Assembly: GCF_001194135.2 (NCBI RefSeq)
Contig: NC_068982.1
Span: 137,761,209-137,825,208, forward strand
From: Octopus bimaculoides
Lineage: Eukaryota
Direction: 5' to 3'
DNA: 64,000 bases
Shown here: positions 5,426-59,806 of the stretch, piece after piece
Layout: each line of letters opens with the position of its first letter
How positions within the stretch are numbered: the first letter of the stretch is position 1
Program-made: the position numbers and the translations under genes
The notes under the pieces: generated by a model
The model's input: only the letters and a program-made list of their open reading frames with translations
Told to the model about the DNA's origin: nothing
Databases searched by the model: none

Positions 5426-5554
5426 GTGATACAAACATCTTCTACCAAAGAATATAGCAAAATTACCAGTCATATTATTTCTGCAAATGTTCTTAACATT
5501 CAGATAACTAACCTTGAAGAACCAGTAAAAATATCATTCAATTTAGTATATCAG
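5426..5554 (+). CDS. Adhesion GPCR exon, GAIN domain: VIQTSSTKEYSKITSHIISANVLNIQITNLEEPVKISFNLVYQ
   Basis: Acceptor ctctttacag|, donor CAG|GTAACA, phase 0-0; 'SHIISA..ITNLEEPVKISF' is the characteristic pre-GPS segment. Confidence 0.9.
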
Positions 5555-6539: not shown

Positions 6540-6725
6540 TCATCATCATCATCATCATCGTTTAACGTCCGCTTTCCATGGTAGCATGGGTTGGACGATT
6601 TGACTGAGGACTGGCAAATCAGGTGGCTGCACCAGGCTCCAATTTGATCTGGCAGAGTTTCTACAGCTGGATGCCCTTCCTAATGCCAACCACTCTGAGA
6701 GTGTAGTGGGCGCTTTTGCGTGCCA
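6540..6725 (-). mobile_element. RTE-LINE 3'UTR copy with (GAT)n tail (family C), cut by a gap
   Basis: 'catcatcatcgtttaacgtccgctttccatg.tagcatgggttggacgatttgactgaggactgg' motif. Confidence 0.85.
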
Positions 6726-8207: not shown

Positions 8208-8345
8208 AACCAACAGTGTGCTTATTGGGATGAATCCTCTGGTCAGAAACCACGTTGGTCAACCAATGGCTGTAATACAACCACCAATGGTCCTGGAGAT
8301 AAAGTAGTTTGTTCCTGTAATCACCTTACAAGTTTTACTCTACTG
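8208..8345 (+). CDS. Adhesion GPCR exon, GPS motif: NQQCAYWDESSGQKPRWSTNGCNTTTNGPGDKVVCSCNHLTSFTLL
   Basis: Acceptor (T)10ctttcag|; canonical GPS C-x-Y-W...W-x-x-x-G-C...C-x-C-x-H-L-T-S-F; in-frame donor CTG|GTTGGT at 8346 (a second GT at 8350 is out of frame). Confidence 0.93.
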
Positions 8346-8904: not shown

Positions 8905-9783
8905 TGACCTATGATTGGCCCTTTTCTATTGACCAATCTGGGATGGAGGAGTAGCAGTTTTTCATTTTGGCAATTTCATGGCAATATGTTTCTGCAGTAA
9001 TGGTTTTGCTGGGTTTTAAGAAGTTATAGTGGATGAATCCAGCAGTACACCACCAAACAATCACCATAACCTTCTTTTTGAAGAGCTTGGGTTTGGGGAA
9101 GGTTTTCGGTGCTTCATTCTGGTCCAACAAGTGCAAAGAACATTTTTTTTATTATTGTACAGAATCCTCTTTTCATTGCAAGTTATAATGAATCAGTCTG
9201 GATATGGAGAAGAAGCAATGAGTGAATTTCATATCTGCGCATTTTCTGATTTTCATTCAAATCGTGTGATACCCATTTGTTGAGCCGTTTTAGTTTTCTG
9301 ATTGCATGTAAATGGTTTCAGGCAGTTTTCTGGCTAATTTGAAGTTATTTTGCCAGATCTAGAGTGGTTTTATGTGGATCTTTCTCAATGATGGTCTTCG
9401 ATTGACTGTCATCAATGACAGATGGATGTCCAAGGCTCAGGTTTCCACTGTGAAATCGTTTAAACCATTTTTGTGTTGACCACACACTGGTCATTTCCTC
9501 ACCAAACATTTCGTTGATATTGTAAGCAGTTTCATCTGCTCTACATCCTCTTTTGAAGTTGAATAGCAAAATTGCTCGAATATCGCGCTTTGACAACTCC
9601 ATTTCAGATGATTGTAACAACGGTGAAAAAATACCAATAGTAGTTTATTGATGCATTTGGGCAAGTCTATGTCTGTATTATCAAACAATTGCAAAAACAA
9701 TGTTTAAAAAAAATTCAAAACTGCCAAAATCCGGAACAAATTCTTCATGGTTCAAAACATTGCTTACTTTTTACTCAACCTGA
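8905..9783 (-). mobile_element. Mariner (DD34D-type) transposase pseudogene, 3'-truncated
   Basis: MELSKRDIRAILLFNFKRG...WFKRFHSG and LDQNEAPKTFPKPKLFKKKVMVIVWW...ETYC are mariner motifs; 5' end TA|TCAGGTTGAGTAAAAAG. Confidence 0.88.
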
Positions 9784-9995: not shown

Positions 9996-10090
9996 GATGT
10001 CGAGCAGCCCTCATTTGTTTTGTCACACGTTAGCTGTGGAATATCATTAGTCTTGCACATTCTTATAGCAATTTTTTATGGTTGTATCAA
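9996..10090 (+). CDS. Adhesion GPCR exon, TM1: DVEQPSFVLSHVSCGISLVLHILIAIFYGCI(K)
   Basis: Acceptor tgtctgtttcag|, donor AA|GTAAGC, phase 2; 'S..SCGISL' resembles the adhesion-GPCR TM1 consensus (YIGCGIS). Confidence 0.88.
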
Positions 10091-16129: not shown

Positions 16130-16750
16130 CACTATAAAAATACACATGGTGGAATCGAAATCGAACCAAATTCGACAACTGGCACCCATGCCAACCTTTC
16201 CTTCATTGGACTCTAAACTCTGCTTGCGAAGAACTGTTGGGTCAAGTGAAATCGAAATCGTAATTCAACCATATTCGATGACTGGCACCTGTGCCAGTGG
16301 AGCACTAATAACACTGTCCGAGCGTGATCATTGCCAGAGCAGCTGTCTGGCTTCCGTGCCAGTGGCCCATAAATAGTACCATTTGAGTGTGATTGTTACC
16401 AGCGTCGCCTTACTGGCACTTGTGATGGTGGCACGTTAGAAAATCATTTGAGCGAGGTCGTTGCCAGTGCCGCTGGACTGGCACATAAAAAACACCATTT
16501 TGAGTGTGGCCGTTGCCAGTACCGTGTGACTGGCCCTCGTACCAGTGGCACGTAAAAGCACCCACTACACTCTCGGAGTGGTTGGCGTTAGGAAGGGCAT
16601 ACAGCTGTAGAAACTCTGCCAGACCAGATTGGAGCCTGGTGCAGCCATCCGGTTCACCAGTCCTCAGTCAAATCGTCCAACCCATGCTAGCATGGAAAGC
16701 GGACATTAAAGAAAGATGATGATGATGATGAGGAGGAGGATGATGATGAT
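16130..16750 (+). mobile_element. RTE-LINE 3'UTR copy (family C) with (GAT)n tail
   Basis: Matches 22200-22828. Confidence 0.85.
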
Positions 16751-17228: not shown

Positions 17229-17352
17229 AAAGCTGCGGAGATGTTTGGCATCAAAGATTTTGATAAGCCTGTGCATTTCATTAGCTGTTGTTAATATCAT
17301 CTTCCTCATTGGGATGCAGCCTTATGCCTTAAAAACAACAGCTGCTTGTAAG
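17229..17352 (+). CDS. Adhesion GPCR exon, ICL1-TM2: KLRRCLASKILISLCISLAVVNIIFLIGMQPYALKTTAACK
   Basis: Acceptor tttttctgttattcag|, donor AAG|GTAAGT; 'KLRR...SKILISLC' motif and ECL1 Cys. Confidence 0.93.
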
Positions 17353-19597: not shown

Positions 19598-19742
19598 GCA
19601 GTGGCTGCTCTGTTACACTACTCCCTTATAGCAACTGTCATGTGGATGGGTATCAAAGTTTTTCATGCTTATATAGTTTTGGTTACTGAAGGGGAAAGCT
19701 ACGAAAAATATTTTATGATCGTGAGTTCAATTTTGGCCTGGG
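19598..19742 (+). CDS. Adhesion GPCR exon, TM3-ICL2-TM4 start: AVAALLHYSLIATVMWMGIKVFHAYIVLVTEGESYEKYFMIVSSILAW(G)
   Basis: Acceptor attcaag|, donor TGGG|GTAAGT, phase 1; 'AALLHY...WM' TM3 and 'WG' TM4 motifs. Confidence 0.93.
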
Positions 19743-20412: not shown

Positions 20413-21984
20413 TTCTTTGTGTTTAATATTTGTACTTGAATGTTAGTTGATGGGAAAAAGTTCACTTGAATGATTCAAACCCAGAATATCACTCATTTGT
20501 ATTCATTTCATTGAACCAAAAATGTTGAAGAAAAAGTTAACTTTGATGGGATTTGAACTCGGGACACTAACTAAACATTGTAAACCATGTTCTTTGACAT
20601 TATCTCAGTGAATGTTGCCTAGTAAGAGTTCAATTTATTTTTCTCGATCTTGTTATTCTGTTCTGATGTTGCAGAAAGTATTGACAATCAATCACTGCTG
20701 TAAAATATCTCAGGAAGGTGCTCTATATCACGAATCCCCTTCAGTGGTTCCAAAAGTAGGTGGTACCATCCCCTTGAGGCAGTGGAAAGATCCAGAGACA
20801 GTGGAAAGATCTGGTGGGGTGGGCGCTGGAATAAAATAGGGCAATAAGGGAGTTATGGATGGCATTGCTAGTATCTATTTTTCAATGGTACACTCAAGTT
20901 TAAAAAATAGTGTTTAGTAAAACTAACTTAAAGAACATCATCATCATCGTTTAACGTCCGCTTTCCATGCTAGCATGGGTTGGACGATTTGACTGAGGAC
21001 TGGTGAACCAGATGGCTACACCAGGCTCCAATCTGATTTGGCAGAGTTTCTACAGCTGGATGCCCTTCCTAACGCCAACCACTCTGAGAGTGTAGTGGGT
21101 GCTTTTATGTGCCACCGGTACGAAGGCCAGTCAGGTGGTACTGGCAACGGCCACGCTCAAAATGGTGTATTTTACGTGCCACCTGCACGGGAGCCAGTCC
21201 AGCGGCCCTGGCAGCGACCTTGCTCGAATGTCTTTTCACGTGCCACCGGCACAAATGCCAGTAAGGCGGCAAAATAAATTTTAAAAAAACAAAAGTTCTC
21301 TAATAAAGCTGGTCATAAAATTCACAAGAGAATTTCCCAAAAAGACAAAAAGCATACAACACTGAACATATGACATTTTTTCATCATGTATTTTTTCAAC
21401 ATTTTGAAAATTTATAATTCGTATTCTTTCAGAAAAAATTTTTCAAAAGGCTATCATTTTTTGGTGGTAGGGTTTCCAGATTTTAATTGTGAAAATCAAA
21501 ATGAAATGGATGTATGAAATTTTTTCTCTAACAATGCATACTACAAATGTTTCAAAATGTGGAATATTATAGCATTGAAAATTAATAGTGCAACCTACTT
21601 AGAACCTCCAAACTTAGCTTGCAGTTAGATTAGTTCTCCTTGCCAAGCAGTAAAAGTATATTTCTTGCTTATGTTTGCTTCGTCAAAGATTAATGTTTTG
21701 TTCAAGAGTAATAATTTGTAAGACAACTAGAAACAGATACACAAGAGGAATCAATATTTTGTGTTTGAGCAATAGAAGGGACACCATCGATGGTAGGTTG
21801 TCATTGCAGCTTTATCAGTTTATTGTAAAAGTTATACCTAGCATGTTTAGTGCACACTCTACAATCTTCAGGCAACATCTGGCTGCAATAACAAATCAAT
21901 GAGCACTGTTATCACAGCAGTTAATAAAATGAACACACATGCTTACAATTCCTCAGTTTCAACTCCTCTGTACTGACAATGATA

Positions 21985-22828
21985 AAGATTTGGTTGAGGG
22001 AACCTGTGGAAGAGGTAGACCCAGGAAGACCTGGGATGAGGTGGTGAAGCACAACCTTCGAACATTAGGCCTCACCGAGGCAATGACTTGTGACCGAGAC
22101 CTTTGGAAATATGCTGTGCATGAGAAGATCCAGCAAGCCAAGTGAGACCATAATCCAAGGCCTCTTTCAGGGATGTAGTCAGCCCACTTATACGTACCTT
22201 TCCTTCATTGGACACTAAATTTCGCTTGCGAAGACCTGTTGAGGCAAGTGAAATCGAAATCGAACTAAATTCGACGACTGGCACCCATGCCAACGTCTCC
22301 TTCACTGGACACTAAACTCGGCTTGCAAAGACCCGTTGGGACAAGTGAAAGCGAAATCGTGATGGCACTTGTACCAGTGGAGCGCTAAGAGCACCATCCA
22401 AGCGTGATCGTTGCCAGAGCAGCTGTCTGGCTTCCGTGCCAGTGGCACGTAAATAGCACCATTTGAGCGTGATCGTTACCAGCGTCGCCTTCCTGGCACT
22501 TGTGCCGGTGGCACGTGAAAAGACATTCGAGCAAGGTCGTTGCCAGTGCCGCTGGACTGGCTCCTGTGCAGGTGGCACATAAAATACACCAATTTTGAGC
22601 ATGGTCATTGCCAGTACCGCCTGACTGGCCTTCGTGCCAGTGGCACGTAAAAGCACCCACTACACTCTCGGAGTGGTTGGTGTTAGGAAGGGCATCCAGC
22701 TGTAGAAATTCTGCCAAATCAGATTGGAGCCTGGTGCAGCCATCTGATTTGCCAGTCCTCAGTCAAATCATCCAACCCATGCTAGCATGGAAAGCAGACG
22801 TTAAATGATGATGATGATGATGATGATG
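21985..22828 (+). mobile_element. 5'-truncated RTE LINE: ORF end (EGTCGRGRPRKTWDEVVKHNLRTLGLTEAMTCDRDLWKYAV) plus about 680-nt 3'UTR and (GAT)n tail
   Basis: RTE C-terminal GRPRKTW motif is contiguous with the abundant family C sequence; a second such copy is at 35398-36230(-). Confidence 0.88.
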
Positions 22829-23429: not shown

Positions 23430-24035
23430 TTAAAGTTAAATGACAAGACCTGTTGAGGCAAGTGAAATCGAAATTGAAAATTGAACCAAATTCGTTGACT
23501 GGCACCCATGCCAACCTTCCTTCATTGGGCACTAAACTCAGCTTGCGAAGACCTGTTGGGGCAAGTGAGATCGAAACTGAACCAAATTCGATGACTGGCA
23601 CCCGTGCCAGTGGAGCGCTAACAGCACCATCCGAGCAGGATCACTGCCAGAGCAGTGGTCTTGCTTCTGTGCCAGTGGTACGTAAAAAGCACCATTTGAG
23701 CACGATCTTTTCCAGCTTCGCTTTACTGGCACTTGAGCTGGTGGCATGTGAACAAAACATTGGACTGGCTCCTGTGCAGGTGGCATGTAAAAAACACCAT
23801 TTGAGTATGGCCATTGCCAGTACCACCGGACTGGCCCTCGTGCCGGTGGTATGTAAAAAGCACCCACTACACTCTCGGAGTGGTTGGCGTTAGGAAGGGT
23901 ATCCAGCTGTAGAAACTCTGCCAGATCAGACTGGAGTCTGGTGTAGCCATCTGGTTCACCAGTCCCCAGTCAAATCGTCCAACCCATGCTAGCATGGAAA
24001 GCGGATGTTAAATGATGATGATGATGATGATGATG
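23430..24035 (+). mobile_element. RTE-LINE 3'UTR copy (family C)
   Basis: Same modules and (GAT)n tail; further copies at 20935-21270(-), 27570-27866(-), 40950-41470(-), 41640-41910(+), 43255-43890(-), 55770-56160(-). Confidence 0.85.
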
Positions 24036-25918: not shown

Positions 25919-25982
25919 GTCTTCCAGCTCTCATTACTCTGGCAGTTAACTTCACAAACAATTACATCAGAGTTGCACAAGT
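25919..25982 (+). CDS. Adhesion GPCR exon, TM4-ECL2: (G)LPALITLAVNFTNNYIRVAQ(V)
   Basis: Acceptor attgtcag|, donor GT|GTAAGT; completes 'WGLP' and is phase-compatible on both sides (1 and 2). Confidence 0.9.
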
Positions 25983-27976
25983 GTAAGTATTTCGCAGTTT
26001 CGTTTACCTCTTTTTTCTCTGATCTTCAAAATTAATATTTTTCTAGACTCATTTATATTTTGAAAAACTATAAAATAATGGATAAGCTACCATCACGCTA
26101 AAGTCATGACCTTCGCTGTTGATAGTGATCCTACTTCACTAACATTGTTAATGTATTTTTTTGTTTTTTTTGAGAAACATGGGTCTCAAAGATCACATTT
26201 GTCCCTCCTTTCCACTCAATAAGAAATCATAAATATCTCTTTTACTCTTTTACTTGTTTCAGTCATTTGACTGTGGTCATGCTGGAGCACCGCCTTTACA
26301 GTCGAGCAAATCGACCCCCAGGACTTATTCTTTGTAAGCCTAGTACTTTTTCTATCGGTCTCATTTGCCAAACCGCTAGGTTACAGGGACATAAACATAC
26401 CAGCATCGATTGTCAAGCGATGTGGTGAGGGGACAAACACAGACACACAGACATATATACACTCACATACATATGTATATACATATGTACAACTGGCTTC
26501 TTTCAGTTTCTTATTTCTTTATTGCCCACAAGGGGCTAAACACAGAGGGGACAAACAAGGACAGACAAAGGGATTAAGTCGATTAGATTGACCCCAGTGT
26601 GTAACTGGTACTTAATTTATCGACCCTGAAAGGATGAAAGGCAAAGTCGACCTCGGCGGAATTTGAACTCAGAACATAACGGCAGACGAAATACTGCAAA
26701 GCATTTCACCCGGCGTGCTAACGTTTCTGCCAGCTCGCCACCTTGTTTCAGTTTCTGTCTACACTCACAAGGCTTTGGACGGCCCGAGGCTATAGTAGAA
26801 GACACTTGCCCAAGGTGCCATGCAGTGGGACTGAACCTGGAACCATGTCTATTGACAGATAACTTCAAACATGAATACAATCAACATATAAGAATAAAAC
26901 AAAGCATCATACATTTTTCAACTTAATTATTTACATGGGCGTAGGAGTGGCTGTGTAGTAAGTAGCTTGCTTACCAACCACATGGTTCCGGGTTCAGTCA
27001 CACTGCGTGGCATCTTAGGCAAGTGTCTTCTACTATAGCCTCAGGCCGACCAAAGCCTCGTGAGTAGATTTGGAAGCCCGTCGTATATATGTATATATAT
27101 ATGTATGTGTGTGTATATGTTTGTGTGTGTGTCTGTGTTTGTCCCCCCAACATCGCTTGACAACTGATGGTGGTGTGTTTATGTCCCTGTAACTTAGCAG
27201 TTCGGCAAAAGGGAACGGTAGAATAAGTACTAGGCTTACGAAGAATAAGCTCTGGGGTCGATTTGCTCGACTATAAAGGCAGTGCTCCAGCATGGCCACA
27301 GTCAAAAGACTGAAACAAGTAAAAGAGTAAAAGAGTAAAGAGTACGATACAAAAGATTGCATTGATTACTAATTATTATTTTTCTTGTATTTTTACAATA
27401 ATATTAGGAATATTTGACACATAAGCTATTGAAATTTGTTACAACAAACAACTAGCTTCTCTTTTATCATTGCAAGTGTCAATGAGGAAACAGTCATATA
27501 ATTAGGTGACAGCCTCAAAGGCTGATAAGTTACTATTTCATCACTTCTGAGTATTCAAGGCTCTATAGTAATTATCATCATCATCATCATTTAACGTCCG
27601 TTTTCCACACTAGCATGGGTTGGACAATTTGACTGAGGTCTGGTGAACCAGAAGGCTGCACCAGGCTCCAATCTGATCTAGCAGAGTTTCTACAGTTGTA
27701 TGCCCTTCCTAACGCCAACCACTCCAAGAGTGTAGTGGGTGCTTTTACGTGCCACTAGCACAAGGGCCAGTCACACGGTACTGGCAACAGCCACACTCAA
27801 AATGGTGTTTTTTTACATGCCACCTGCACAGGAGCTAGTCCAGCGGCACTGGCAACAACCTTGCTCATGTATGTATGTATGTATGTATGTATGTATGTAT
27901 GTATGTATGTATGTGTGTGTGTGTATGTGTGTGTGTATGTATGCATGCATGTATGTATGTATGCATGTATGTATGT

Positions 27977-28490
27977 AATTGTGAGAGGGAGGCACAAGAC
28001 CGTGATGGATGGAAGAAGATAGTGCATGATGGTTGTTTAAGGTTTGAGAGGGAGAGAGTGAAGTATGAGAGAATTGAGAGGGGGCTTAGAAAGGGGAACC
28101 TGTGGAAAGTGAGAGTGTTGCTTTCTATATGTGTGGTTTGTGGGCGGAGGTGTTTGAGTCATGCAGGCCTGGTGAGCCATCAAAATTCTCATAGAAATCG
28201 ACCCATGATAAACAATGATGTGACTATTAAAATTCATAACAGAACGTGTATAAAATGTGGAAGGGTGTACCTCTCAGTTGGAGATCTAAAAAGACATTTT
28301 AAGGGAGTGCATATGGTGGCACCTGTTTCTCCTGCCAGCCAGCACAGTTGTCTAGTATATAATAAAATGTATAAAAGCTTGGCCGGGCTTAAAAGTCATA
28401 TAAGGGCATCACATGGAAACAATCAGGAATCATTTCAGTAAGTCTTCTTGGCAATGGCTTTTCTTGTGTAACGAGGATGCAAGTGTGACA
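27977..28490 (+). mobile_element. RTE-clade LINE 3' fragment with three C2H2-like motifs, flanked by (TATG)n
   Basis: EREAQDRDGWKKIVHDGCLRFERER...CVVCGRRCLSHAGLVSHQNSH...CIKCGRVYLSVGDLKRHFKGVH...CLVYNKMYKSLAGLKSHIRASH. Confidence 0.75.
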
Positions 28491-29360: not shown

Positions 29361-29620
29361 TTTTTGTTTGTATGTATGTATGTATGTATGTATGTATGTG
29401 TGTATGTATGTATTCATGTATTCATGTATGTGTGTGTGTATGTATTTCCCTTGTGAAATAATTGATAGATGTCTTAGATAACAATGTACAACCAGTAATG
29501 AAATGTCTTCTTTCATTTTGGATGAAAATCACATCCCCATAATGCCTCTTTGATTTATCAGTTTATTAAGTGAATATTTGGTAAGTTTCCTTTCTTAATT
29601 GATTTTCTATTTCTTTGTAG

Positions 29621-29997
29621 CTGTTGGTTATCCAAGACAACTTTTTACATTACTTTCCTGACACCTGTGGTGATAGTGTGCATCTTCCATATTATCTTCA
29701 GTTTTCTTATACAGAAAATTATGCGAAGACACACCATACAAGAACAGAAAAGAACAGCTTTTCTTAGCTTCATTTGTGTGTTTTTCCTATTGTTCCTGCT
29801 CAGATTCTCATGGTTATTAACATTCTTAGCTTTTGATGAAGCAGCCGAAGTGTTCGACAAGCTCTTCAGTATATTCAACCTCTTACAAAGTCTCCTTATC
29901 TTCTTATTTTACTGTATAAACGAGAAATATATCAGACATCTCATCTGCAAGTGTGCATGGAATCAAGAGGAAGAGAAAACTATGAACAGCAGCCAAA
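29621..29997 (+). CDS. Adhesion GPCR exon, ECL2 (CWL) to TM5-TM7 and helix 8; reads to TGA at 30003-30005 if the donor at 29998 is not used
   Basis: Acceptor ttctttgtag|C TGT TGG TTA (VCWLS); three hydrophobic segments ending 'FSIFNLLQSLLIFLFYCINEKYIR'; perfect donor CAAA|GTAAGT at 29998, phase 1. Confidence 0.92.
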
Positions 29998-30173
29998 GTA
30001 AGTGAAATTAAGTACTTTTTTCATTCTTACCACCACCAAAATCATCATGACACCAAAATTATCATGATGAGGATAATCACAAACATCACATCTAGCGACA
30101 CAACCAGTATCGACACCACCTTAGGGTAGACATCATCATAAATACCAACTCTACTGTGTGTGCATGTGTGCGC

Positions 30174-30211
<38 letters not shown>

Positions 30212-30288
30212 ATATGTATGTGGGTGGGTGTAAAATATACATACACTCATACTTTGAGTTCTATTTCTCCTGTTTGCACCAACATACC

Positions 30289-30320
<32 letters not shown>

Positions 30321-30879
30321 TAATATGTAATTATATGCATATATCCATACATATATGTACATACCTACATCTATATGTATACATACATGCATATATGGGT
30401 ACAGGACATTAAAAAAAACGTTAAACACAATGAGAAACGAGACANNNNNNNNNNNNNNNNNNNNNNNNNNNNNNNNNNNNNNNNNNNNNNNNNNNNNNNN
30501 NNNNNNNNNNNNNNNNNNNNNNNNNNNNNNNNNNNNNNNNNNNNNNNNNNNNNNNNNNNNNNNNNNNNNNNNNNNNNNNNNNNNNNNNNNNNNNNNNNNN
30601 NNNNNNNNNNNNNNNNNNNNNNNNNNNNNNNNNNNNNNNNNNNNNNNNNNNNNNNNNNNNNNNNNNNNNNNNNNNNNNNNNNNNNNNNNNNNNNNNNNNN
30701 NNNNNNNNNNNNNNNNNNNNNNNNNNNNNNNNNNNTATATATATATATAGCAAGATTAAAAGAAGATAGAGATATACAATTAACATATTTTAAATTTGAT
30801 TTATTAAGATTATAATATAATTATGCTATAATATAAAATAAAAAAATAAGAATACAAAAGCAAATATTAGTCCTTCAAG

Positions 30880-31660
30880 TTGTTTTGATTCATACCCAAT
30901 AATGAATTTATGGAAACATTCATATTTATGGGTATGAATCTCATCAGGGCAATATTTGCCAAAAAGAAGCAGACATCTAAGGATTGCTAAATCATAGAAT
31001 TGTGTTTCTCCAAAATGGATAAACATAAAATCTCATTGAATTCATGAAGATTCTTGTAAAGAAAACAATAAGTCAAGGGGCTCTTGGATGACATCTTTTG
31101 AGTGGTTATCTCCCCTGGATTTGACTTTTGGGCAAACAGTTATGTCGGATGGTAAATTGTTTGCATTACATTGTATTATATACTGTGTGTATGTGATGTT
31201 CATATGCTTGTGTGCTGAGGTAGTTCGTCATGGAGAAATATTTCTTCTGTGTGTGGAGTTCATGTGTTATGTATATTCAAATTTCACTTTCAGGAAAGGA
31301 GCTATCCTTGTGGGATTAGCAGCACAGGTGGTGGTTCCTTTTTGAAGTGTTTAAGTGTGAAATATTGCTTGTGTATGCAGGGAGAGAACATTTCATCCCT
31401 AATATTTAGGATATTATCTATTGGCTGTATTATATTTAATTTTTCAGCGATATGTCTTTGTATGAAGCTTCTTCATTTGGTTTACTGTAGGGTTCGAATT
31501 TGCCTGTGCTAAGGTTCATGTTAATATTTAGAAAATTGACTTCTTTAAGGTTGGTACAAATTGTGGTTCTCAGACCTAGTTGGCTAAATACTTTGTATAA
31601 TTTTGTCCTTACTCTATGCATATTATGTCCGTTTTGATTGTGTACCACTCCCAGGCAACC
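30880..31660 (-). mobile_element. Penelope-like element RT C-terminal fragment, degenerate
   Basis: KVFSQLGLRTTICTNLKEVNFLNINMNLSTGKFEPYSKPN resembles the PLE 'N.K.VNFLDVT.NL..G.Y.PY.KPN' motif. Confidence 0.65.
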
Positions 31661-32469
31661 TTCCCTATATAAAGCTATACTCTTTTACTTGTTTCAGTCA
31701 TTTGACTGTGGCCATGCTGGAGCACCGCCATTAGTCGAGCTAATCGACCCCAGGACTTATTCTTTCTAAGCCTAGTACTTATTCTATTGATCTCTTTTAC
31801 TGAACTGCTAAGTTACGGGGACGTAAACACACCAAGTGATGTTGGGGGGGGGGGCGACAAACACAAACACATACACACGCATACATATATATATATACAT
31901 ATATACGATGGGCTGCTTTCAGTGTCTGTCCACCAAATCCATTCACAAGGCTTTGGTCGGCCTGAGGCTATAGTAGAAGACACTTGCCCAAGGTGCCTTG
32001 CAGTGGGACTGAACCCGGAACCATGTGGTCCATAAGCAAGCTACTTACCACGCAGCCACTCGTACGCCTATGTATGTTAGCTTTTTTTTTTTTTTCTTTT
32101 CTAAAGATATCTAAAATATAGAGATCTACAAGATCAGCTATTTCTATGCTCTCATAGCTCCCCATTGCCACATGAAATAATTCATCCCCCTTCTTCTTTA
32201 CCCAATAAGAATTATCATAAAAACGTCATGGCTTCCTTGCCTTCATAATTATATTTATATCAGTGTTTGTTATGATAACGTAAGCCTTACTAAATTTACG
32301 TGCCTTCTGAAGCAAGCTTTTGGAGACTGAGATGTAAAACTCTATATCAAATTGTATAAATTTGTATTTGAGTTTACCTTCTATTTTCTTAAAGTGTTCA
32401 ATAGTGTGTGTGTGTGTGTGTGTGTGAATGTATGCATGTATACATGCAGATTTGTATGTTTTGTTTTAT

Positions 32470-32690
32470 ATATGTATTCTCATGCATATACTTTCACATC
32501 TAGACATGCTCATATAAATTAAAATAATAAACCTCTGGAAAGTTTTACAGATTTTTACACTTCCAGTGATGGATTGGATCTATAGTCTTCGAATCAGTTT
32601 TCTCCTTTCTGGTTTTGAGAAGCCTAATTTCTCAAGATTGGTATTTAGGGGTAGTGTGTTACATATCCTAGTGCCCCAATAATTACAGAT
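32470..32690 (-). mobile_element. 3' fragment of RLE-type LINE (same family as 10810-11010)
   Basis: Reverse complement matches 'aaataccaatcttgagaaattaggcttctcaaaaccagaa...gatccaatccatcactggaa'. Confidence 0.75.
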
Positions 32691-32697
32691 ATAAACA

Positions 32698-32754
<57 letters not shown>

Positions 32755-34245
32755 AAGCAAGTACAAATGTGTATCTCTATGTGCATATATGTATGTGAGG
32801 TCGATGAAAACGATTTACCCACTGCCCCGAAATTGTTGGTTTTGTGCCCAAATTTGAAACCAATATTACTGAAATCTCATAAAGTATCTACTGAGGTTAG
32901 CACAGTTGGTAATATGGATAAATTAGAATACAATAGAGTTAATAATAGGGCAAAAAAAGAGAAATATGTTATTATGTTGGTGTAAACAGGTGAGTTAATG
33001 ACAATATTTCTGTTTTGTTTTACAGGTGAGTTCATAACAATATTTTTGTTTTACATCTTTACTAGGTTTACTGATAGGTTATTAATATTATTGGTTTTTA
33101 GCCAGATATCTGTCATAATCTGGCAGACTTATGATAAAAAGTGTTCCAAGTGTGACCATCCTGTCTTTTTCACTTATTGTAAATCAGTAAATACATTAAA
33201 CATATCTTCATATCAAAGTATCAAACTTTGGTTTGCTACTAAGATAACCATTCTCTTTCTGTCTTCAAGATTAGATACAGGCTGCAAGATACAAAATAAT
33301 AAATACGAAATAACAAATGATAGTGTCATTATCTTTCATCATCTTCTTCCATGCTTCAATCGATTACCATGAGTCATCAATGTCCAAGTCAGTTCTTATT
33401 CAGAGTTAACATCCACTTTGACTGTTTGAGGTACACATCTCACTTAAATACTTTGGATTTTCTATGACAAGATACCCTTCTTAACACCAGCCACTTTATA
33501 AAGGATCTTGGGTACGTTTTATTGCAACACAGGCATTAATAAGATTGTCATCATCATTACTATTTAACGTCCATTGTCCATGCTAGGATGGGTTGGACAG
33601 TTTGACCAGAGCTGGCAAGCTGAGGGGCTGTACCAGACTCCAAGGTCCACAATTAGATTGAAGGTTCCACTGAAAATTACAGTGTCTCCTCTCATTCACC
33701 AGTCACTTCCAAGTGTGTACTGGGGCCATTTTCTCATAGTGCAAGCACTGGTCAGGTTGTCTTGCATCTCATATTATTATACAATTCTCATTGCTCTTTG
33801 ATGTGTTTTTACAATCATGTTGAGAAAGTGAGAAGTTTAAGTGATAACGGAAGAATAATGAGGATGCAGGGACTGAAAGTTACAAGAAAATGAGGATAAG
33901 AACAATGACTTGAAAGCGAGGTGGAGAATGACATGACTGAATGGTTGAAGCTAAGATACAATTATTTATGAGATGGTTAATGATTTACTAACATCTTGAG
34001 AATCCAATAATCAAAGACAGTGTTACTTACTACTAGAACATTAGTGTTGGCTTTGGTAAAGTATGAGGCTCAATCACAAAATCTCAACAAGCATTAGAAA
34101 GTCTAACTGTCAAATCATTTGGTCAGTGTTGCTGTGAATGTTCGTAATTGGTAAAAGTGTAGATTAATAATTATAGCTTTGTGTGTGGATGTGAATGTTG
34201 GTAAATTTTACTATAAATTATAACACTTGAAATTATGAATTTCAG

Positions 34246-34512
34246 ACTTACAAATGCAGGGACAACCAAGGATATCGAAGCAAAGTACATCACCGCAAAG
34301 TACATCACAGCAAAGTACATCACCGCAAAGTACATCATCGCAAAGTACATCATCGCAAAGTACATCACAGCAAAGTACATCACAGCAAAGTACATCACAG
34401 CAAAGTACATTACAGCAAAGTATATCACTGCAAAGTACATCACTGCAAAGTACATCACAGCAAAGTACATCACAGCAAAGTACATCACAGCAAAGAACAC
34501 CTCAGCCAGTTG
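34246..34512 (+). CDS. Putative cytoplasmic-tail exon, Ser/Thr/Gln-rich: LQMQGQPRISK(QSTSQ-like)x14 QRTPQPV
   Basis: Acceptor tgaatttcag|, donor GTTG|GTGAGT; 267 nt symmetric phase 1-1 exon, open in the frame that links 29997 to 37989. Confidence 0.65.
34280..34504 (+). repeat. 15-bp coding minisatellite GCAAAGTACATCACA, 14 copies plus one degenerate copy
   Basis: Units start at 34280 and recur every 15 nt to 34490; variation concentrates in the last 3 nt. Confidence 0.97.
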
Positions 34513-35071
34513 GTGAGTATAAAAGTGAAGTACCAAATTGATTTCTATAAGTCTTCCCTTCAGCACTAGCACTGGTCAGGTTTTCTTGCATCTCATAAAA
34601 TTAGACAGTTCTTACTGCTCTTAAGATGTGTTTTTTCATTCAAGGTAACATGTTGAGAAGTGATGACAGAAGAATAATGAGGATGCAGGGACTGAAAGTT
34701 GTGAGAAAATGAGGATAAGAACAATGACTTGAAAGCGAGGTGGAGAATGACAAGACTGAGTGATTGTCAGTTGTAAGCCAACAGAGATGATTAATGATGT
34801 ATTAACATCTTGGGAAACTGATAATTAAAGTCAAAAGTACTTATAAGAACATCATTCTCAGCTTTCTAATGTAGGAGATTCAATAACAAATCTCAACTGA
34901 AAATGTTTTTAACTGGTTAAAATTGTTAAAGATAATTTCATTTGTTTACAAAATCATTCTCCTGAAGTTCTTGATTTATCATCTTATGAAGATGTCAGAT
35001 GTTCGGTATGAGATATCATCTCTCGTTGGAGTATCTTCTCAGAAGGTCTCAGGTTAGAATATATATTATAG

Positions 35072-35107
<36 letters not shown>

Positions 35108-35397
35108 ACTGAGAATGCATGTGTGTGTGCATGTAAATGTGTGTCTGTTTGTGTGTGTGCATCACTAAAACTCAGGAACTACTCAAACGATTTCATTCAA
35201 ATTTTACACACGCCCTATTTAAGGTCCATGCAGTGTCATGGGCCAAAAAGATTTTCAACTTCTTGCCTAATGTGAGCCTGGAGCAATCTCTTATCTCTTA
35301 CACTATTTCGGTATTACCTGTCAAAAGTGAAACAATAAAATCGCTATTGTAATGTGAGAGAATACTTTCACTGTGATATATTTTTGTATGTATATGT

Positions 35398-36230
35398 ATC
35401 ATCATCATCATCATCGTCGTCATTTAACGTCCGCTTTCCATACTAGCATGGGTTGGACGATTTGACTGAGGACTGGTGAAACCAGATGGCTACACCAGGC
35501 TCCAATCTGATTTGGCAGAGTTTCTACAGCTGGATGCCCTTCCTAACGCTAACCACTCTGAGAGTGTAGTAGGTGCTTTTACATGCCACCGGCACGAAGG
35601 CCAGTCAGGTGGTACCAGCAACGGCCACGCTCAAAATGGTGTATTTTACGTGCCACCTGCACAGGAGCCAGTTCGGCGGCACTGCCAATGATCTCGCTCG
35701 AATGTCTTTACACGTGCCATNNNNNNNNNNNNNNNNNNNNNNNNNNNNNNNNNNNNNNNNNNNNNNNNNNNNNNNNNNNNNNNNNNNNNNNNNNNNNNNN
35801 NNNNNNNNNNNNNNNNNNNNNNNNNNNNNNNNNNNNNNNNNNNNNNNNNNNNNNNNNNNNNNNNNNNNNNNNNNNNNNNNNNNNNNNNNNNNNNNCAATG
35901 AAGGAGACGATGTTGGCATGGGTGCCAGTCGTCGAATTTAGTTCGATTTCGATTTCACTTTCCTCAACAGGTCTTCGCAAGTGGAGTTTAGTGTCCAATG
36001 AAGGAAGGTACGTATGAGTGGGCTGCCTGAGGCCTTGGATTTAGGTCTCACTTGGCTTGTCTGGTCTTCTCACGCACAGCATATTTCCAAAGGTCTCGGT
36101 CAGAAGTCATCGCCTCGGTGAGGCCCAATGTTCGAAGGTCATGCCTCACCACCTCATCCCAGGTCTTCCTGGGCCTACCTCTTCCACAGGTTCCCTCCAA
36201 TGCTAGGGTGTGGCACTTTTTCACACAGCT
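35398..36230 (-). mobile_element. 5'-truncated RTE LINE (ORF end plus 3'UTR), contains a gap
   Basis: LEGTCGRGRPRKTWDEVVRHDLRTLGLTEAMTSDRDLWKYAVREKTRQAK* then family C UTR. Confidence 0.88.
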
Positions 36231-37988
36231 ATCCTCATCCAATGCATGTATATGTATGTTTATATGTCTATGCATACATATCAGATCAGACTGGAGCCTG
36301 GTGCAGCCTTCTGGCTTGCCAGCCCTCAATCAGACCTCCAATCCCTGCCAGCATGGAAAGCGGATATTAAAAGACAATGATGATGATGGGACTTCTACAA
36401 TATAGATCTGTGCTGAGACACAATCATATTCATTGTAATGAAAGTCACTGATTTTTTTAGTCAGATTATATATAATCTATATAGATATCTAGTATTGCAA
36501 GGTCAGACAGTGTAATTTTGTATTATATATATACCCTGTTAACATGATAATGAATCAGATATTATTCATTAACTGTTTTACATTTGTATGTCTGAAATTT
36601 AACCTTATTTTGTCATAGCATCATCTTGTACCCTCACCCAACAGGTTTAAACCTTGTTACCATTTGTGTAAGTAATTCTAATGTTTTTCTTGGGCATGCA
36701 ACCACTTCTCTACAAACTGGGATTATTGACTTCTATAGTCCAATAAGGTCCAGATGTTATTGTGTCCTAGCTTCATTCCAAATGAAACAAAATGTGAAGC
36801 ATTTCTGTATATTTATGATACTATTTAGGTATATTTTATAAAGTATTACGGTGACTTTTTGTAATTAGTTGGTCTTAATTAACATTAGTGACAAATGTAG
36901 TATAACAGAGGTAATGTGAATGGGATTACACATTCCTCGTGATGTTGTTCTTATATTAACAATAACATCACAAAGACAAGTTTCTGTCAGTCAGACCCTT
37001 CTACACAGGTGTAAGTTCCAAGTCCAAATTTACTGGTTACTCGGTTTCTACCCTATCAATGTCAACCACATTGATAAAGGAGATATCAAAGAGGAAGGTA
37101 ACTTTGTTTGATGTATAGATGAGATTTAAATAGAGGTAACCTATATTCTTGAGAATAAGTTCTTTTGTACCATTCCAGATATCTTTGTCACAATATATGG
37201 ATGATCGCTTATATGCAGTTTATGAGATTGAGTGCAAGTGCACAGTGTTTTATGGCACATTACCACTGTCCATTTCACCTGTGTAGATCTAATCATTGTT
37301 CACCTGAAAAGAAACTGCTTTATTAAGGAGGATGAATGACAAGCAAATGTTTTCAAATATTTCAAGAATCAGATGACATTCTGGTGAACTGTAACGTGGG
37401 CGGTTAAAATTAAAGATTACCAGTGGCAACCTTTAACAGAGAGAGAGAGAGACAGACAGAGAGACAGAGACAGAGAGATATATATATAGAGAGAGACAGA
37501 GAGAGACACAGAGAGAGAGCAGGTATATGATGATCCTAAATGAAGTGGTGTGTCATGTGTTTGTGGCTAGATCTTAGATGGACAACCTGGTTGACATTGG
37601 AATTAAGCAGATGATGAGAAGAATATTGGTTAGTAAAGTCTAGAAGTGAGAGGATATAGATATGACTGAAATATAATAAATGAAAGACAAAACTAAATGA
37701 TAAAAATCCTTAACAATTGGTAAATAAATTAGATAATTGCAACATTGTTAGATTAAGTAGGATGTCTTAATATAGAGAGGAGATTTAGGAAGACTAGTTT
37801 GCTCTGTTGTAGACCTAAATATCAAGTTATTACATGGTACCACTGTAGAAAGTATAAAAATGTTGACTGAAATCACAGTGGTCACCAGTTGACCATTAAT
37901 GATAGGAATATCTCACAACATTGAAATATGAATTCCAATAGAGATATAGAAATTTAACTATTAAGTGTAAAACTTGGAAATATTTCAG

Positions 37989-38060
37989 AGAATTCAAGGC
38001 TGACCGAATCGGATCTCCTACAGGTGGCAAAACATTTAGGACCAAACTGGAAGCATGTTG
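37989..38060 (+). CDS. Death domain exon 1: (E)NSRLTESDLLQVAKHLGPNWKHV(G)
   Basis: Acceptor tatttcag|, donor GTTG|GTAAGT; 72 nt, phase 1-1; 'LxxVAxxLGxxWKxVG' matches death-domain helices 1-2. Confidence 0.82.
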
Positions 38061-39628
38061 GTAAGTATAAAATAAGAATACTTAATTGATTTCTATAAGT
38101 TTTACCTACAGTTGAACTTTTGTTTGCTAGAATGACTGTGAACTGGTTCCATTCCTAATTTCCAATTGAAAGATTAACTGTAATGTAATTCTATAAAAGA
38201 TACTGATATTACTGAAATTTCATAAAATATCTACGGAGGTTAGTAATGAAACAACACAATACAGTTGATATTGTCTTTTGGAATTGGGAACTGAAATACA
38301 CCATTGTGTTGGTATAAGCAGGCGAGTTAATGGTAATGTCTTTGTTTTACATTTTTTTCTGAGTTTGTTGATGTTATTGCTGTTTAGCCAGATGTTTATT
38401 GTAATTTGGTTGACATATGATAAAAAGTCTTCTATTTGTGAAATCCCCGACTTGTTTGTGGGAGCATGTTATCAAATGTATCCTTTATAACACGATAGGG
38501 TGTATTTTGAGTGAAGTATGCTTACCTTATTTCTTGCCAGTTTTTATACATCCTCCACACTCAATGCAACATTACACTTTACAAATACACATCATACAAT
38601 CTACTCTTCATCTAGGGATGGAATCCCTTAGTTGCCAGTGGACATAATAGCTTTCAGTGCATTCTTCACTTAATTTTTTTCTCTAACTACAATGCTACAT
38701 GCAAAGTCCTTTCTCTCTGTCAATCTACCTCTGATCCAACTACACCTCTAATGTGTAATGGGTGCACCATACAGAATTCCTGTCAACCCTCCCCTCCCCA
38801 CCACCATCTTTCTTGCATGTCAAATATGGTAACTCTCCAGATGATATAGATACTGATTGACGTAGTGGTTCCTTCAGGACTTAACTGTTTTAGATGTAAA
38901 GTCCAGATGTTGGTACCTCCTATCTTCTTTCCTATTAACTAAAATTCTTTTCATTGCTTGGTTTTCTTTCAGACCTCTCCATTATCAACTTCTCTATAAA
39001 TTGTGGCCTTGATCCAGTGAGTCACGAACCCTAGTTCATGTTTATAGCTAGTGTGTTTTATAATATGCGATGTGTATCTGACAATATTATATTTTGCATT
39101 TTGTGTAGCTGAGATTATTCTGGTATCATATTTGTATTTCATTGGTCCTGCTGCACCCAATATTACCAGTATTGTTTGATAGTCCAATCCCTGCTGTCTA
39201 CATTTTGATACATTATAAATATTAAATAGCCAGAAAAGGAGAGGCATTACACATGCCCTTTTAGGAATTAATCATGTGATGTTATCAGGTGATCATCAGT
39301 ATTTGGAGCAAATGGTGTGACTGTTGGCGATCTATGTTGATTCTTTTGGCTCTGATACACTTTTGCCAACACAAACACTTCTCCTTCCATTTGTTTACCA
39401 GAAATTTTCCCAAAAGTAATTTTCAATTAATCCTTAATTTCTTCTCCACCTTCATCTTTTATTTCAACCTCTGATATTTTTACTAACATCTTTAAAAACA
39501 GAGAACAATGTCTTATACTTTTCGTGTTTCTTAACAATGGTTATTTCTCTACAGATATAGTTTCTTTATTATATTTATGTTACTGTTAATGTTGTTGCAA
39601 TTAGTTCTTGTTTTTGTGTCTTTTGCAG

Positions 39629-39834
39629 GTATCTTTCTGGGCATTGATTTAGTCAGCCTAGAAAATATCAAGCATGATCATGCTAATAACAGTCGAGAAC
39701 AGAGCTTTCAGATGCTAACAACATGGTTTAGAGGCTCCGATTGTAAGACAGATAGAGTTGAAATACTCAGAGAAGCTATTGAAAATGCTGAGTGTTACTA
39801 TGCACTTGAACATCTACCAAAAGACATAAAGTAA
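39629..39834 (+). CDS. Death domain exon 2 (terminal): IFLGIDLVSLENIKHDHANNSREQSFQMLTTWFRGSDCKTDRVEILREAIENAECYYALEHLPKDIK*
   Basis: Strong acceptor tttttgtgtcttttgcag|; 'LG...I....EQ.FQML..W' death-domain signature; TAA at 39832-39834; AATAAA near 39982. Confidence 0.85.
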
Positions 39835-42122
39835 ATTTCTGTGTAAATGCAGATGTTGTTTAGCCCCAGGCCAACCTTGGCTAGACAGAAACCTATGATC
39901 TAATGCATTCCAGCCAGAATCGATTTTCACAGATCATTGCTCATTTTTCTATAAAAAAACTTTATGAATGTATATTTCAAAATAAATCCATAGATTTAAA
40001 ATTTAATAACCATGTTGGAAAATTCTGTAACATAAAAATGATGACACAAGGCATTGGGACAATATATTACTTACTTTTTCCTTCTTTTTTGTTTTGAGTA
40101 GGCAGTACTGTTTGTCTAATGCAATGAAAGAAAAGTTTTTCATGTNNNNNNNNNNNNNNNNNNNNNNNNNNNNNNNNNNNNNNNNNNNNNNNNNNNNNNN
40201 NNNNNNNNNNNNNNNNNNNNNNNNNNNNNNNNNNNNNNNNNNNNNCAAATTCTGCCGAGGTCGACTTTACCTTTCATCCTTTCAGGGTCAATAAAGTAAG
40301 TACCACTTGCGTACTGGGGTCAATCTAATCAACTGCCCCGCTCCCCCAAAATTTCAGGTCTTGTGCCGAGAATAGAAAAGAATATCTACCTTCATTCATA
40401 TTTTTGTTAAAAATTGCATTATGAATTCAGAAAGTAAAAATCTCTTCCTGACAAAAATTTTTCTTTTGAAGAAATTTTTACTTTCTAAATTCATAATGCA
40501 ATTTTTGTTATTGTAAAACATGAATGAAGGTAGATATTGTAACACGTGTAGGTGTTATGAAATTGATTGCTATGTGTTTGTGTTTATGAATTTGTGTTTC
40601 AAGATAACTGATGTGAAATTGTCTGTTGAAACAAATAATGTTATATTTCAGGCAGGTGATTTTTTTTTTGTCAAATAAACACTCACACTACATACTCGTT
40701 CTTCACTCATTTATCATTTTTCTTATTTTAACTAATATCCATTGTCTGCAAATCTTTTTATCACACATCTGTGACCTATTCAATGACCCTTTCTGTCATG
40801 GAAAGGGTCACTGAAGAGATCGCAGATGTGTGACTAAAGATTTGTAGACAATGGACATCAGTTATAATAACAACAGTGATAAATGAGTGAAAATGAATAT
40901 ATAGAGCATGATTTTATTTGGCAAAAAAAATGACCATCCTGAACTATAACAATCATCATCATCATTTAACGTCCACCTTTCATGCTATCATGGGTTGGAC
41001 GATTTGACTGGGGACTGGTGAACCAGATGGCTACACCAGGCTCCAATCTGATCTGGCAGAGTTTCTATAGCTGGATGCCCTTCCTAACGCCAACTACTCT
41101 GAGAGTGTAGTGGGTGCCTTTACGTGCCACCGGCACGAGGGCCTGTCAGGCTGTACTGGCAACGGCCATGCTCAAATTGGTGTATTTTACGGACCACCTG
41201 CACAGGAGCCAGTCCAGTGACACTGGCAACGACCTCGCATGAATGGAAGCCAGACAGCTGCTCTGGCAATGATCACGTTCGGATGGTGCTCTTAGTGCTC
41301 CACTGGCACAGGTGCCAGTCATCGAATTTGGTTCAATCATGATTTCGATTTCACTTGTCCCAACAGGTCTTCACAAGCCGAGTTTAATGTCCAATGAAGG
41401 AGAGGTTTGCATAGGTGCCAGTTGTCGAATTTGGATCGATTTCATTTGCCTCAACAGGTCTTCGCCTGTTTATAATTTTCACCTTTAAAAGTATTTTAAT
41501 ATGCTGGCCAGTTTGATGAAATTTTTTGGAAAAAAAAATATTTATACTCTGTGCAGGCTGTTCCGTTGATCGGATCAACTGGAAGCCTCGACGTCGTAAG
41601 CGACGGAGTGCCAACAACAACATATATATATATACATACTGTGCAGGTAGCACGTAAAATACACCATTTTGAGCGTGGCCGTTGCCAGTACCGCCTGACT
41701 GGCCCTCGTGTCAGTGGCACGTAAAAGCACCCACTACACTCTCAGAGTGGTTGGCATTAGGAAGGGCATCCAGCTGTAGAAACTCTGCCAAATCAGATTG
41801 GAGCGTGGTGTAGCCATCTGATTTCACCAGTCCTCAGTCAAATCGTCCAACCCATGCTAGCATGGAAAGCGGACGTTAAACGATGATGACGATGATGATG
41901 ATGATGATATATATCTATATATTTATATATATACACACATATACATATACAATGGGCGTCCTTCAGTTTCTGAAATTACCAAATCCACTCACAAAGCTTT
42001 GGCCTGCCCAAGGCTATTAGAAGACACTTTCCCAAGATGCTACGCAGTGGGACTGAACCTGGAACCATGTTGTTAGAAAGTAAAGTTCTTACCACACAGC
42101 CACTCTTACATATATATATGTA

Positions 42123-58513: not shown

Positions 58514-59806
58514 TTGGATCATTCCATAAATAATATGGTTTTTCTCAATTGCATGAACTAAAAGTCGGATGGGCATGGGATAAAGTACCTGCGTCAACTT
58601 GCAATAAAAACAGGTATTAATTTTACCTTGTACTTATTCTTAGTGCAAGTTTTGAAGAGTACAGTTCGATTTTAACAGTTATTTTTTCAAAGCTATAATA
58701 GAAGTGACAAATGAGCATATTCGGCAAATTTTGCTTTATGAGTTCAATAAAGGCAACAATGCAATGGAAAGTGTGAGGAATATTAATTCAGTATATGGCG
58801 ATTGGGTAGTAAGCATAAGTGAATGTCAACAATCACTCCAGAAATTCCAAGCTGGAAACTACAGCCTAGAAGACGAGCCTCATCCTAGAAGATCTGTAGA
58901 GCTTCGTAAGGATATCCTGCAAACCCTGGTGGAACAAAATCCCATCATAACTGCTGAAGAACTAGCAAAGAATCTTGGATTTGGTCGTTCAACAATTTGT
59001 CGATACCTGCATACCATCAGAAAAGTCAGTAAATTGGGTCAATGGGTTCCTCACAATCTTTTCGAGTCTAATCACATGCAAAGAGTGAACGTGTGCTCTT
59101 CTTTGCTGTTCCATCTAATGAATAAACCTTTTTGGGATTTAATAGTGACTGATGACAAGAAATAGGTTCTCTATAAAAATGTCAAGTGCCGAAGACAGTG
59201 GGTAGGCAAAGGAGAAACACTTGGCACCCCAGGCTAAAGAAGGTCTTCACCCACATAAGGTGTTGTTATCTGTTTGGTGGGAAATGAAAGGTTTAGTCCA
59301 CTTTGAACTTTTAAACCCAAACCAAACGATAACAAAGGAGATCTACTGCAAGCAGTTTGAGGGGCTTAAGCCAAAGCTAGAAGAAAAATAACCATCTTCG
59401 GTTTTAAGACGAAAGGTGTTCTTCCATCAGGATAATGCTCGGCCACATACAGTGAGGATGACATTCCAAAGGCTGGAGCAGTTTGAATGGGAAAACATGC
59501 TCCACCCACCATGTTTGCCAGACATTGCCCCATCTGATTATCGTTTATTCTGCAGTCTTCAAAATTATTTGGACAGAAAAAATATGAATTCTATAGACAA
59601 GGTCAGAACAATACTGGAGGAGTATTTTTTGTCATGGACAAGTGAATTCTGGAAGAGGGCTCTTGCAAGTTTACCAGATAGATGGAAGAGCATTGTAGAA
59701 AATGAAGGAGAGTATATTTTAGATCTAGAAAAAAAGAACATTTTTTATCTTAATTTTGAAAAATAAAAGAAGTATAAAAAAGCTGCATTATTTATGGGAT
59801 GACTGT
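58514..59806 (+). mobile_element. Near full-length mariner element (about 1.3 kb); transposase pseudogene at 58704-59766
   Basis: HIRQILLYEFNKG, LGQWVPHNL, LIVTDDKK, FHQDNARPH, APSDYRLF motifs (DD34D); imperfect TIRs TCATTCCATAAATAAT / ATTATTTATGGGATGA; internal stop at 59163 and frameshifts. Confidence 0.92.

Follow-up and report, generated by a model that had tools for sequence, protein, structure and literature searches.

Death domains (DDs) work by homotypic oligomerisation, and in PIDD1 such a domain is found together with leucine-rich repeats (LRRs) in one autoproteolytic protein. The tails of vertebrate adhesion G-protein-coupled receptors (GPCRs) are not known to carry a death-fold domain. 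An octopus-specific expansion of adhesion GPCRs, termed 'group 3', was described by Ritschard et al. 2019 (PMC6408891), and the combination of an adhesion GPCR with a DD is mentioned there in a single sentence. In the same work, Table S3 lists Ocbimv22014869m (A0A0L8FLR8) with LRRs, GPS at residues 691-734, 7tm_2 at 742-970 and Death at 1100-1178, and according to Table S2 its expression shares are 0.71 in skin and 0.17 in sucker, with a tau of 0.96. The literature on Ocbimv22014869m amounts to one sentence and one table row and contains no analysis of its tail, origin, evolution or function; searches for adhesion GPCRs with a DD, or for octopus or mollusc DDs, returned nothing beyond the sentence of Ritschard et al. 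and no functional work. We analysed the corresponding gene, LOC106882527, in a 64,000-nucleotide (nt) stretch of the Octopus bimaculoides genome (contig NC_068982.1, positions 137,761,209 to 137,825,208; CM046602.1, ~137.76-137.83 Mb), hereafter called the window, for which an earlier reading (the original prediction) had proposed an adhesion GPCR fused to a cytoplasmic DD. The receptor and the DD are probably parts of one protein, and the DD exons carry a strong signal of diversifying selection. Whether gene models of this kind were already in databases had been left open; the architecture does exist in RefSeq and UniProt (2015-2019) and in Ritschard et al. 2019 (PMC6408891), hence it is not new and a discovery claim for it is weak. 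The fast evolution of the DD seems to be the part that has not been reported.

The window is AT-rich animal DNA carrying nine N gaps. It contains the 3' part of LOC106882527, namely its last 13 exons, all on the + strand, the start of the gene lying upstream. The exons were located by a splice-boundary search anchored on protein matches and total 2019 nt, as counted in the original prediction; the translation of the joined exons is identical to residues 864-1535 of XP_052821851.1 plus the stop. The four tail exons (29621-29997, 34246-34512, 37989-38060 and 39629-39834) lie where they had been placed, with AG acceptors and GT donors, and their open joined frame yields the peptide quoted at the time. 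A cluster look-up gave three public records for the gene: XP_014788728.1, which carries the name 'G-protein coupled receptor 126-like', XP_052821851.1, the full-length protein of 1535 amino acids, and UniRef/UniProt A0A0L8FLR8 (= Ocbimv22014869m) of 1183 amino acids. All three are identical in sequence to the window gene and join the seven-transmembrane (7TM) region, linker and DD exactly as predicted. An exhaustive HMMER search with the DD as query returned a 1283-amino-acid protein with 100% identity across the DD. Every junction from the 7TM exon onward is phase 1, the linker exon and DD exon 1 being symmetric (1-1), and read-through past the donor of the 7TM exon meets a stop at 30003-30005, two codons beyond the donor. 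The features of the locus are given below in window coordinates, with a slash marking cleavage or splice sites and TM denoting transmembrane helices.

1-86, + strand: GAIN-region exon, matching XP_052821851.1 from residue 864 (exact spliced match)
478-649, + strand: GAIN-region exon (spliced match to XP_052821851.1)
1469-1612, + strand: GAIN-region exon (spliced match to XP_052821851.1)
5426-5554, + strand: GAIN-region exon (spliced match to XP_052821851.1)
8208-8345, + strand: GPS exon (CSCNHL/TSFTLL), with the predicted autoproteolysis site and start of the tethered agonist (Pfam GPS, 51.3 bits)
9996-10090, + strand: TM1 exon (spliced match to XP_052821851.1)
17229-17352, + strand: TM2 exon (spliced match to XP_052821851.1)
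19598-19742, + strand: TM3 exon (spliced match to XP_052821851.1)
25919-25982, + strand: TM4 exon (spliced match to XP_052821851.1)
29621-29997, + strand: exon for TM5-TM7 and the proximal tail, with a phase-1 donor CAAA/GTAAGT from 29998 (Pfam 7tm_2)
30445-30735, no strand: assembly gap in intron 10, in a lineage-specific repeat insertion (colinearity with relatives)
34246-34512, + strand: linker exon of 267 nt, phase 1-1, encoding (QSTSx)n (spliced match to XP_052821851.1)
34968-35011, + strand: candidate alternative terminal exon (V-LDLSSYEDVRCSV, then stop), with homology to the last exon of the O. vulgaris model (acceptor CCTG here, CCAG in O. vulgaris)
35721-35895, no strand: assembly gap in intron 11, within or beside a copy of a dispersed repeat (colinearity with relatives)
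37989-38060, + strand: DD exon 1 of 72 nt, phase 1-1 (Pfam Death; spliced match to XP_052821851.1)
39629-39834, + strand: DD exon 2 with the stop codon (Pfam Death; spliced match; AATAAA downstream at 39981)

In XP_052821851.1, a signal peptide is followed by ~20 LRRs, a Cys-rich region, a GAIN domain with an HL/T GPS, a class-B2 7TM domain, a (QSTSx)n linker and the C-terminal DD. Pfam analysis of the full protein gave 303 bits for LRR_8, the repeats being coded upstream of the window, so that the ectodomain is long and carries adhesion-type modules. GPS scored 51.3 bits at residues 1043-1086, with the triad HL/T kept in CSCNHLTSF, and 7tm_2 (PF00002), which begins at residue 1094, scored 83.9 bits against a cut-off of 20.6 and covered model positions 6-250 of 250, i.e., the complete model. 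The 7TM exon alone reached 25 bits with the same model and cut-off. The Pfam GAIN model gave no match to the protein, and the GAIN domain was placed through alignment to the ADGRG6 and ADGRG2 structures; the GAIN and 7TM region matches solved ADGRG2 (E 3e-52), ADGRG6 (E 2e-48), ADGRG3 and ADGRL3. For Death (PF00531; cut-off 22.6), 31.2 bits were obtained with the isolated last 92 amino acids and 28.8 bits with the full protein. Since the isolated Death segment and the 7TM exon both score above their cut-offs, the joined reading is more than chance. When compared with solved DDs (phmmer), the octopus domain matched PIDD best (2of5_H, 2.5e-7), followed by RIPK1 (7.7e-5), and also CRADD, Fas, ankyrin and TNFR1. 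The AlphaFold2 model of the DD is all-helical, with a predicted local distance difference test value (pLDDT) of 70 and a predicted template modelling score (pTM) of 0.61, but it was built from a 5-sequence alignment and is of moderate confidence only. In a Foldseek comparison of this model with the PDB, the top 16 matches were all DDs, with a TM-score of 0.73 and a root-mean-square deviation of 2.7 Å to 2of5_H. The original prediction of a GAIN/GPS 7TM adhesion receptor ending in ~90 amino acids of DD was thereby borne out by the GPS, 7tm_2 and Death hidden Markov models, by the solved ADGRG2, ADGRG6 and DD structures and by the predicted fold, the GAIN model being the one of those it named that gave no match. 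In every feature that sequence can test, the protein is an adhesion GPCR (class B2) as well as a DD protein. Autoproteolysis at the GPS and activation by a tethered agonist are predicted. By GPCR topology the DD would be cytoplasmic, some 130 residues beyond TM7 on a flexible S/T/Q-rich linker whose (QSTSx)n part spans ~90 amino acids.

We consider it likely, from gene models and comparative gene structure, that the receptor, linker and DD are expressed as one transcription unit and one protein. The predicted join of the 7TM exon to the DD exons is present in the three public models of O. bimaculoides, which come from two pipelines; in the annotations of O. sinensis and O. vulgaris, however, receptor and DD tail are kept apart. 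O. vulgaris has retained the 7TM donor GTAAGTG in the same phase despite a 24-nt in-frame indel; the segment concerned (29974-29997, KTMNSSQ..), which precedes the donor in the window, is missing from O. vulgaris. In the O. vulgaris model P0001, this donor is joined to a cassette exon (GRELPPR..TTRQSTSPSN) belonging to an array of tandem ~3.1-kb units; O. sinensis has units of this family too (93-96% identical), and they lead via many cassette exons to the DD exons.

Besides the moderate confidence of the DD model, several observations weigh against this reading. The join is backed by gene predictions and comparative structure only. All ten isoforms of the O. sinensis RefSeq locus LOC115232413 are tail-only (300-363 amino acids) and lack the 7TM part, and in O. 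vulgaris the last exon of the receptor model is short and encodes no DD (EVLLDLSSYEDVTFLR, then stop). No contiguous stretch with both a 7TM exon and a DD exon was found in the retrieved O. vulgaris and O. sinensis loci: the former (L001) stops short of any DD, and the latter (L002) begins past any 7TM exon. The 10-kb upstream flank of L002 contains only further repeat units, and the L001 and L002 arrays align in many registers at 93-96% identity, so that there is no unique anchor between them. In the window itself, an in-frame ATG at 34254 could begin a soluble protein of linker and DD from an internal promoter. The separate O. sinensis locus, the DD-less end of the O. vulgaris model and the ATG at 34254 would all fit a chimeric gene model, in which the receptor terminates close to 30005 or with a short last exon, the linker and DD belong to a separate downstream gene for a small soluble DD protein, and the fused open reading frame (ORF) arises artificially from compatible phases and predicted read-through. 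Such a chimera is improbable in our view. The start of the O. sinensis tail-only coding sequence (L002:10001) is an ATG inside a cassette exon, with a canonical acceptor 25 nt upstream; this exon has a 1-nt deletion in comparison to its sister units, and further array units lie upstream of it. For these reasons the start looks like a truncated ORF call and not like a first exon. The O. vulgaris model itself joins the 7TM exon to the cassette-exon array, and the parts are fused in all three O. bimaculoides models, which two pipelines produced. Moreover, where the O. vulgaris-type terminal exon has the acceptor CCAG/AA, the window reads CCTG (CAG to CTG); together with the internal position of the O. 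sinensis start, this weakens the case against the fusion. 

An ORF piece at 34949-35011 (..EVLDLSSYEDVRCSV, then stop) is homologous to the O. vulgaris terminal exon and recurs in each array unit of the relatives. The ORF piece 'LDLSSYEDV' was considered as the true end of the receptor and down-weighted, as the O. vulgaris acceptor is mutated here and the entire unit is about as conserved as introns are.

The same terminal exon bears on a further explanation, which we judge unlikely: that a receptor lacking the DD is the dominant product, formed by retention of intron 10 (reaching the stop at 30003-30005) or by splicing to the exon at 34968-35011, and that the DD isoform is rare or tissue-restricted. 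The stop just two codons beyond the donor, the extensive skipping of cassette exons in the O. sinensis tail and the use of a homologous terminal exon by the O. vulgaris model are in line with it. However, the donor AA/GTAAGT is strong and conserved, the sole poly(A) signal after 30005 is ~400 nt away, the O. vulgaris-type exon has lost its acceptor, and neither alternative is used by any O. bimaculoides model.

The fused frame is not interrupted by the assembly gaps. Gap 30445-30735 lies within intron 10 and gap 35721-35895 within intron 11, which leaves all exons and the reading frame untouched by them. In the chromosome-scale assembly GCA_001194135.2, every base is the same as in the window and the gaps are present too, so that public data leave both unresolved. 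The flanks of the first gap (29369-30299 and 32405-33608) are colinear with gap-free O. vulgaris sequence (L001 33440-34347 and 34399-35623), with ~2.1 kb of O. bimaculoides repeats in place of ~50 bp in L001. Those of the second gap (35103-35399, 36246-36374 and 36377-38222) are colinear with O. sinensis sequence (L002 71079-71375, 71472-71581 and 71620-73416). This colinearity with gap-free relatives places both gaps inside O. bimaculoides-specific repeat insertions that have no counterpart in the relatives, and, together with the intronic position of the gaps, it makes concealed exons unlikely. No paralogous receptor exons were found at 40-64 kb of the window.

The nearest relatives of the DD (43-52% identity) are all Octopus proteins, mostly MIB2-like proteins with ankyrin repeats, a RING finger and a DD (Ank-RING-DD), plus small DD-only proteins. 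One O. bimaculoides MIB2-like gene, L004, encodes its DD in a 72-nt phase 1-1 exon ending W..VG and a terminal exon starting from IFLGI (34837-34908 and 37445-37636), as in the window (37989-38060 and 39629-39834), and the intron ends are similar. This shared two-exon structure points to exon shuffling of the DD module. No second protein combining 7tm_2 and Death was found: a 7TM region was absent from the other 149 best DD relatives (local phmmer), a list limited to DDs close to that of the window.

The linker differs in organisation between species. In O. bimaculoides it is a single exon, in which a 15-nt x 14.7 tandem repeat at 34279-34499 codes for (QSTSx)n. In O. vulgaris (L001 36000-52844) and O. 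sinensis (L002 1-55000) it is a tandem array of units of ~3.1 kb that each contain a cassette exon of phase 1-1, and these exons are alternatively spliced among the O. sinensis isoforms. DD exon 1 is tandemly duplicated in O. sinensis (L002 73205-73276 and 74290-74361), and both copies are included in isoforms X1, X2, X7, X8 and X10. Within the octopus lineage, the tail probably arose through tandem duplication of ~3-kb units bearing phase 1-1 exons, and it probably also acquired the two-exon DD module that is common to octopus MIB2-like Ank-RING-DD genes.

Around the DD, the window is colinear with O. sinensis L002, in which the counterparts of the DD exons lie at 74290-74361 (exon 1) and 78465-78668 (exon 2). 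DD exon 2 is 75.2% identical between the two species, whereas the upstream intron is 92.4% and the 3' untranslated region 86.5% identical; DD exon 1 is 67% identical and its flanks 92-95%. Half of the compared codons of DD exon 2 (34/68) are identical; the remaining 34 are all changed nonsynonymously, none of the changes being synonymous only, and the differences number 23, 20 and 8 at the first, second and third codon positions. According to the Nei-Gojobori method, the nonsynonymous rate (dN) is 0.38 and the synonymous rate (dS) 0.08, a ratio of ~4.8 (Fisher p = 0.0014), these dN/dS values and those below being pairwise estimates on short exons. The positions that are kept are fold-core motifs common to paralogous DDs (LGI, SFQML.TW and EILREA.ENA.C..AL). 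Derived changes of the DD are present in both lineages and are more numerous in O. sinensis. For the GPS and TM1 exons, dN/dS is ~0.3. We take the values of the DD exons as a strong signal of diversifying selection. Replacement of the domain surface at a rate faster than neutral, while the fold core is kept, argues for a functional tail. Gene conversion from a paralogous DD was considered as the cause of the fast divergence and rejected, as the low synonymous divergence (dS 0.08) argues against it.

Two observations count against a constrained receptor with a working DD. The TM5-7 exon has a dN/dS of ~1 and an identity equal to that of its introns, which could reflect relaxed constraint on the receptor, and the O. 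sinensis tail, with its doubled DD exon 1, gives no Pfam Death match. Along with a linker that is unstable, made of a 15-nt repeat in O. bimaculoides but of a multi-unit array in O. vulgaris and O. sinensis, they would be compatible with a DD tail that is transcribed in the fusion yet is a decaying lineage-specific accident with no signalling role. Neutrality, however, predicts a dN/dS of ~1 and an exon divergence equal to that of introns, and the DD exon has diverged ~3x faster than the intron, with its 34 nonsynonymous and zero synonymous-only codon changes; in addition, the ORF is intact in both species and the fold-core residues are retained. Decay of the tail is therefore very improbable. 

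Intron divergence was ~15% around the TM5-7 exon (29369-30299, compared with O. vulgaris) and 5-8% around the DD exons (37500-40145, compared with O. sinensis); this contrast might come from L001 being a paralogue, from local constraint or from heterogeneous rates.

Several mobile elements were observed in and around the gene. Transposon remnants are found at 58704-59165 (+), 9345-9620 (-) and 4044-4358 (+), among them HTH_48 domains of Mos1-type mariners and a helix-turn-helix match, weak and Tc3-like, just under the Pfam cut-off. A dispersed repeat with a recurring ORF fragment (..RLQSDLAEFLQLDALPNANHS..) occurs at 2316-2582, 6608-6703, 16504-16716, 20993-21274, 22599-22805, 23857-24008, 27633-27755 and 35470-35688; one copy adjoins the gap at 35721-35895, and copies are also present in the O. 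vulgaris and O. sinensis loci. Intron 9 contains an ORF of 188 amino acids (27875-28441, +) with weak C2H2 zinc-finger matches below the Pfam cut-offs, which is probably derived from a mobile element.

A possible mode of action can be outlined from these features. The original prediction had further proposed that death-fold adaptors could be recruited, that adhesion or mechanosensing might thereby be tied to immune or apoptotic signalling, and that a short form without the DD might end at 30005, all of which we treat as conjecture. The receptor may serve as a surface sensor, expressed mainly in skin and suckers, whose LRR ectodomain would recognise a ligand, either from a surface or from microbes. 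Clustering upon ligand binding, or activation through the GPS and tethered agonist, could bring the DD tails together, and these might then seed homotypic assembly with cytosolic DD proteins, such as MyD88/IRAK-, FADD- or PIDD/RAIDD-like proteins or the related MIB2-like E3 ligases. Such an assembly would act in parallel with, or in place of, G-protein coupling. The diversifying surface residues of the DD would fit an interface involved in a host-pathogen contest or in one with a fast co-evolving partner. As a whole, we offer only tentatively, and as a possibility that may well fail, the idea that this adhesion GPCR signals like a death receptor, its clustered, fast-evolving DD seeding a Myddosome- or PIDDosome-like assembly or recruiting MIB2-like E3 ligases, independently of G proteins and arrestins and shaped by an arms race. 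What we infer from the sequence and its comparison is that the fused mRNA predominates, as well as the topology of the receptor, its partners and its role in the animal. Provided that the fusion is produced as a protein with an active DD, it would unite seven-helix receptors with death-fold oligomeric platforms, which are usually separate, in cephalopod barrier and sensory tissues, and it would illustrate clearly how exon shuffling can give a receptor a new output. Odd DD combinations are common in invertebrate genomes, and the octopus receptor is one lineage-specific gene known from predictions alone.

Among described proteins, the vertebrate receptors ADGRG2 and ADGRG6 (GPR64 and GPR126) have the GAIN/GPS and 7tm_2 core in common with the octopus receptor, and the LRR-bearing ectodomain of ADGRA2/3 (GPR124/125) resembles its LRR ectodomain. 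Unlike the vertebrate adhesion GPCRs, the octopus protein has a tail that ends in a Pfam-significant DD. TNFR1, Fas, p75NTR, DR6 and UNC5 are likewise membrane receptors with a C-terminal cytoplasmic DD, and the octopus DD matches those of TNFR1, Fas and RIPK1 in both sequence and fold. These death receptors, however, are single-pass proteins with TNFR cysteine-rich or Ig/TSP ectodomains, and with ZU5-UPA in the case of UNC5, whereas the octopus protein has seven helices and LRRs. Pfam found no ZU5, UPA or TNFR (TNFR_c6) modules in the full protein, in which the DD is preceded by the low-complexity linker. With seven helices, an LRR ectodomain and no TNFR_c6 match, it falls outside the TNFR-type death receptors, and, given that no ZU5 was found by Pfam, also outside the ZU5-UPA-DD supramodule proteins (UNC5, PIDD and ankyrins). 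PIDD1/LRDD, of the PIDDosome (2OF5), provides the best solved match of the octopus DD (E 2.5e-7, TM-score 0.73), but, unlike the octopus receptor, it is cytosolic, contains ZU5/UPA and has no transmembrane domain. The closest DDs are those of the Octopus MIB2-like Ank-RING-DD proteins (e.g., XP_014768682.2 and XP_014776763.1), which have the same two-exon structure with the 72-nt phase 1-1 exon; these proteins are of the soluble E3-ligase type, with ankyrin repeats and a RING finger, and in contrast to the octopus receptor they have no receptor part.

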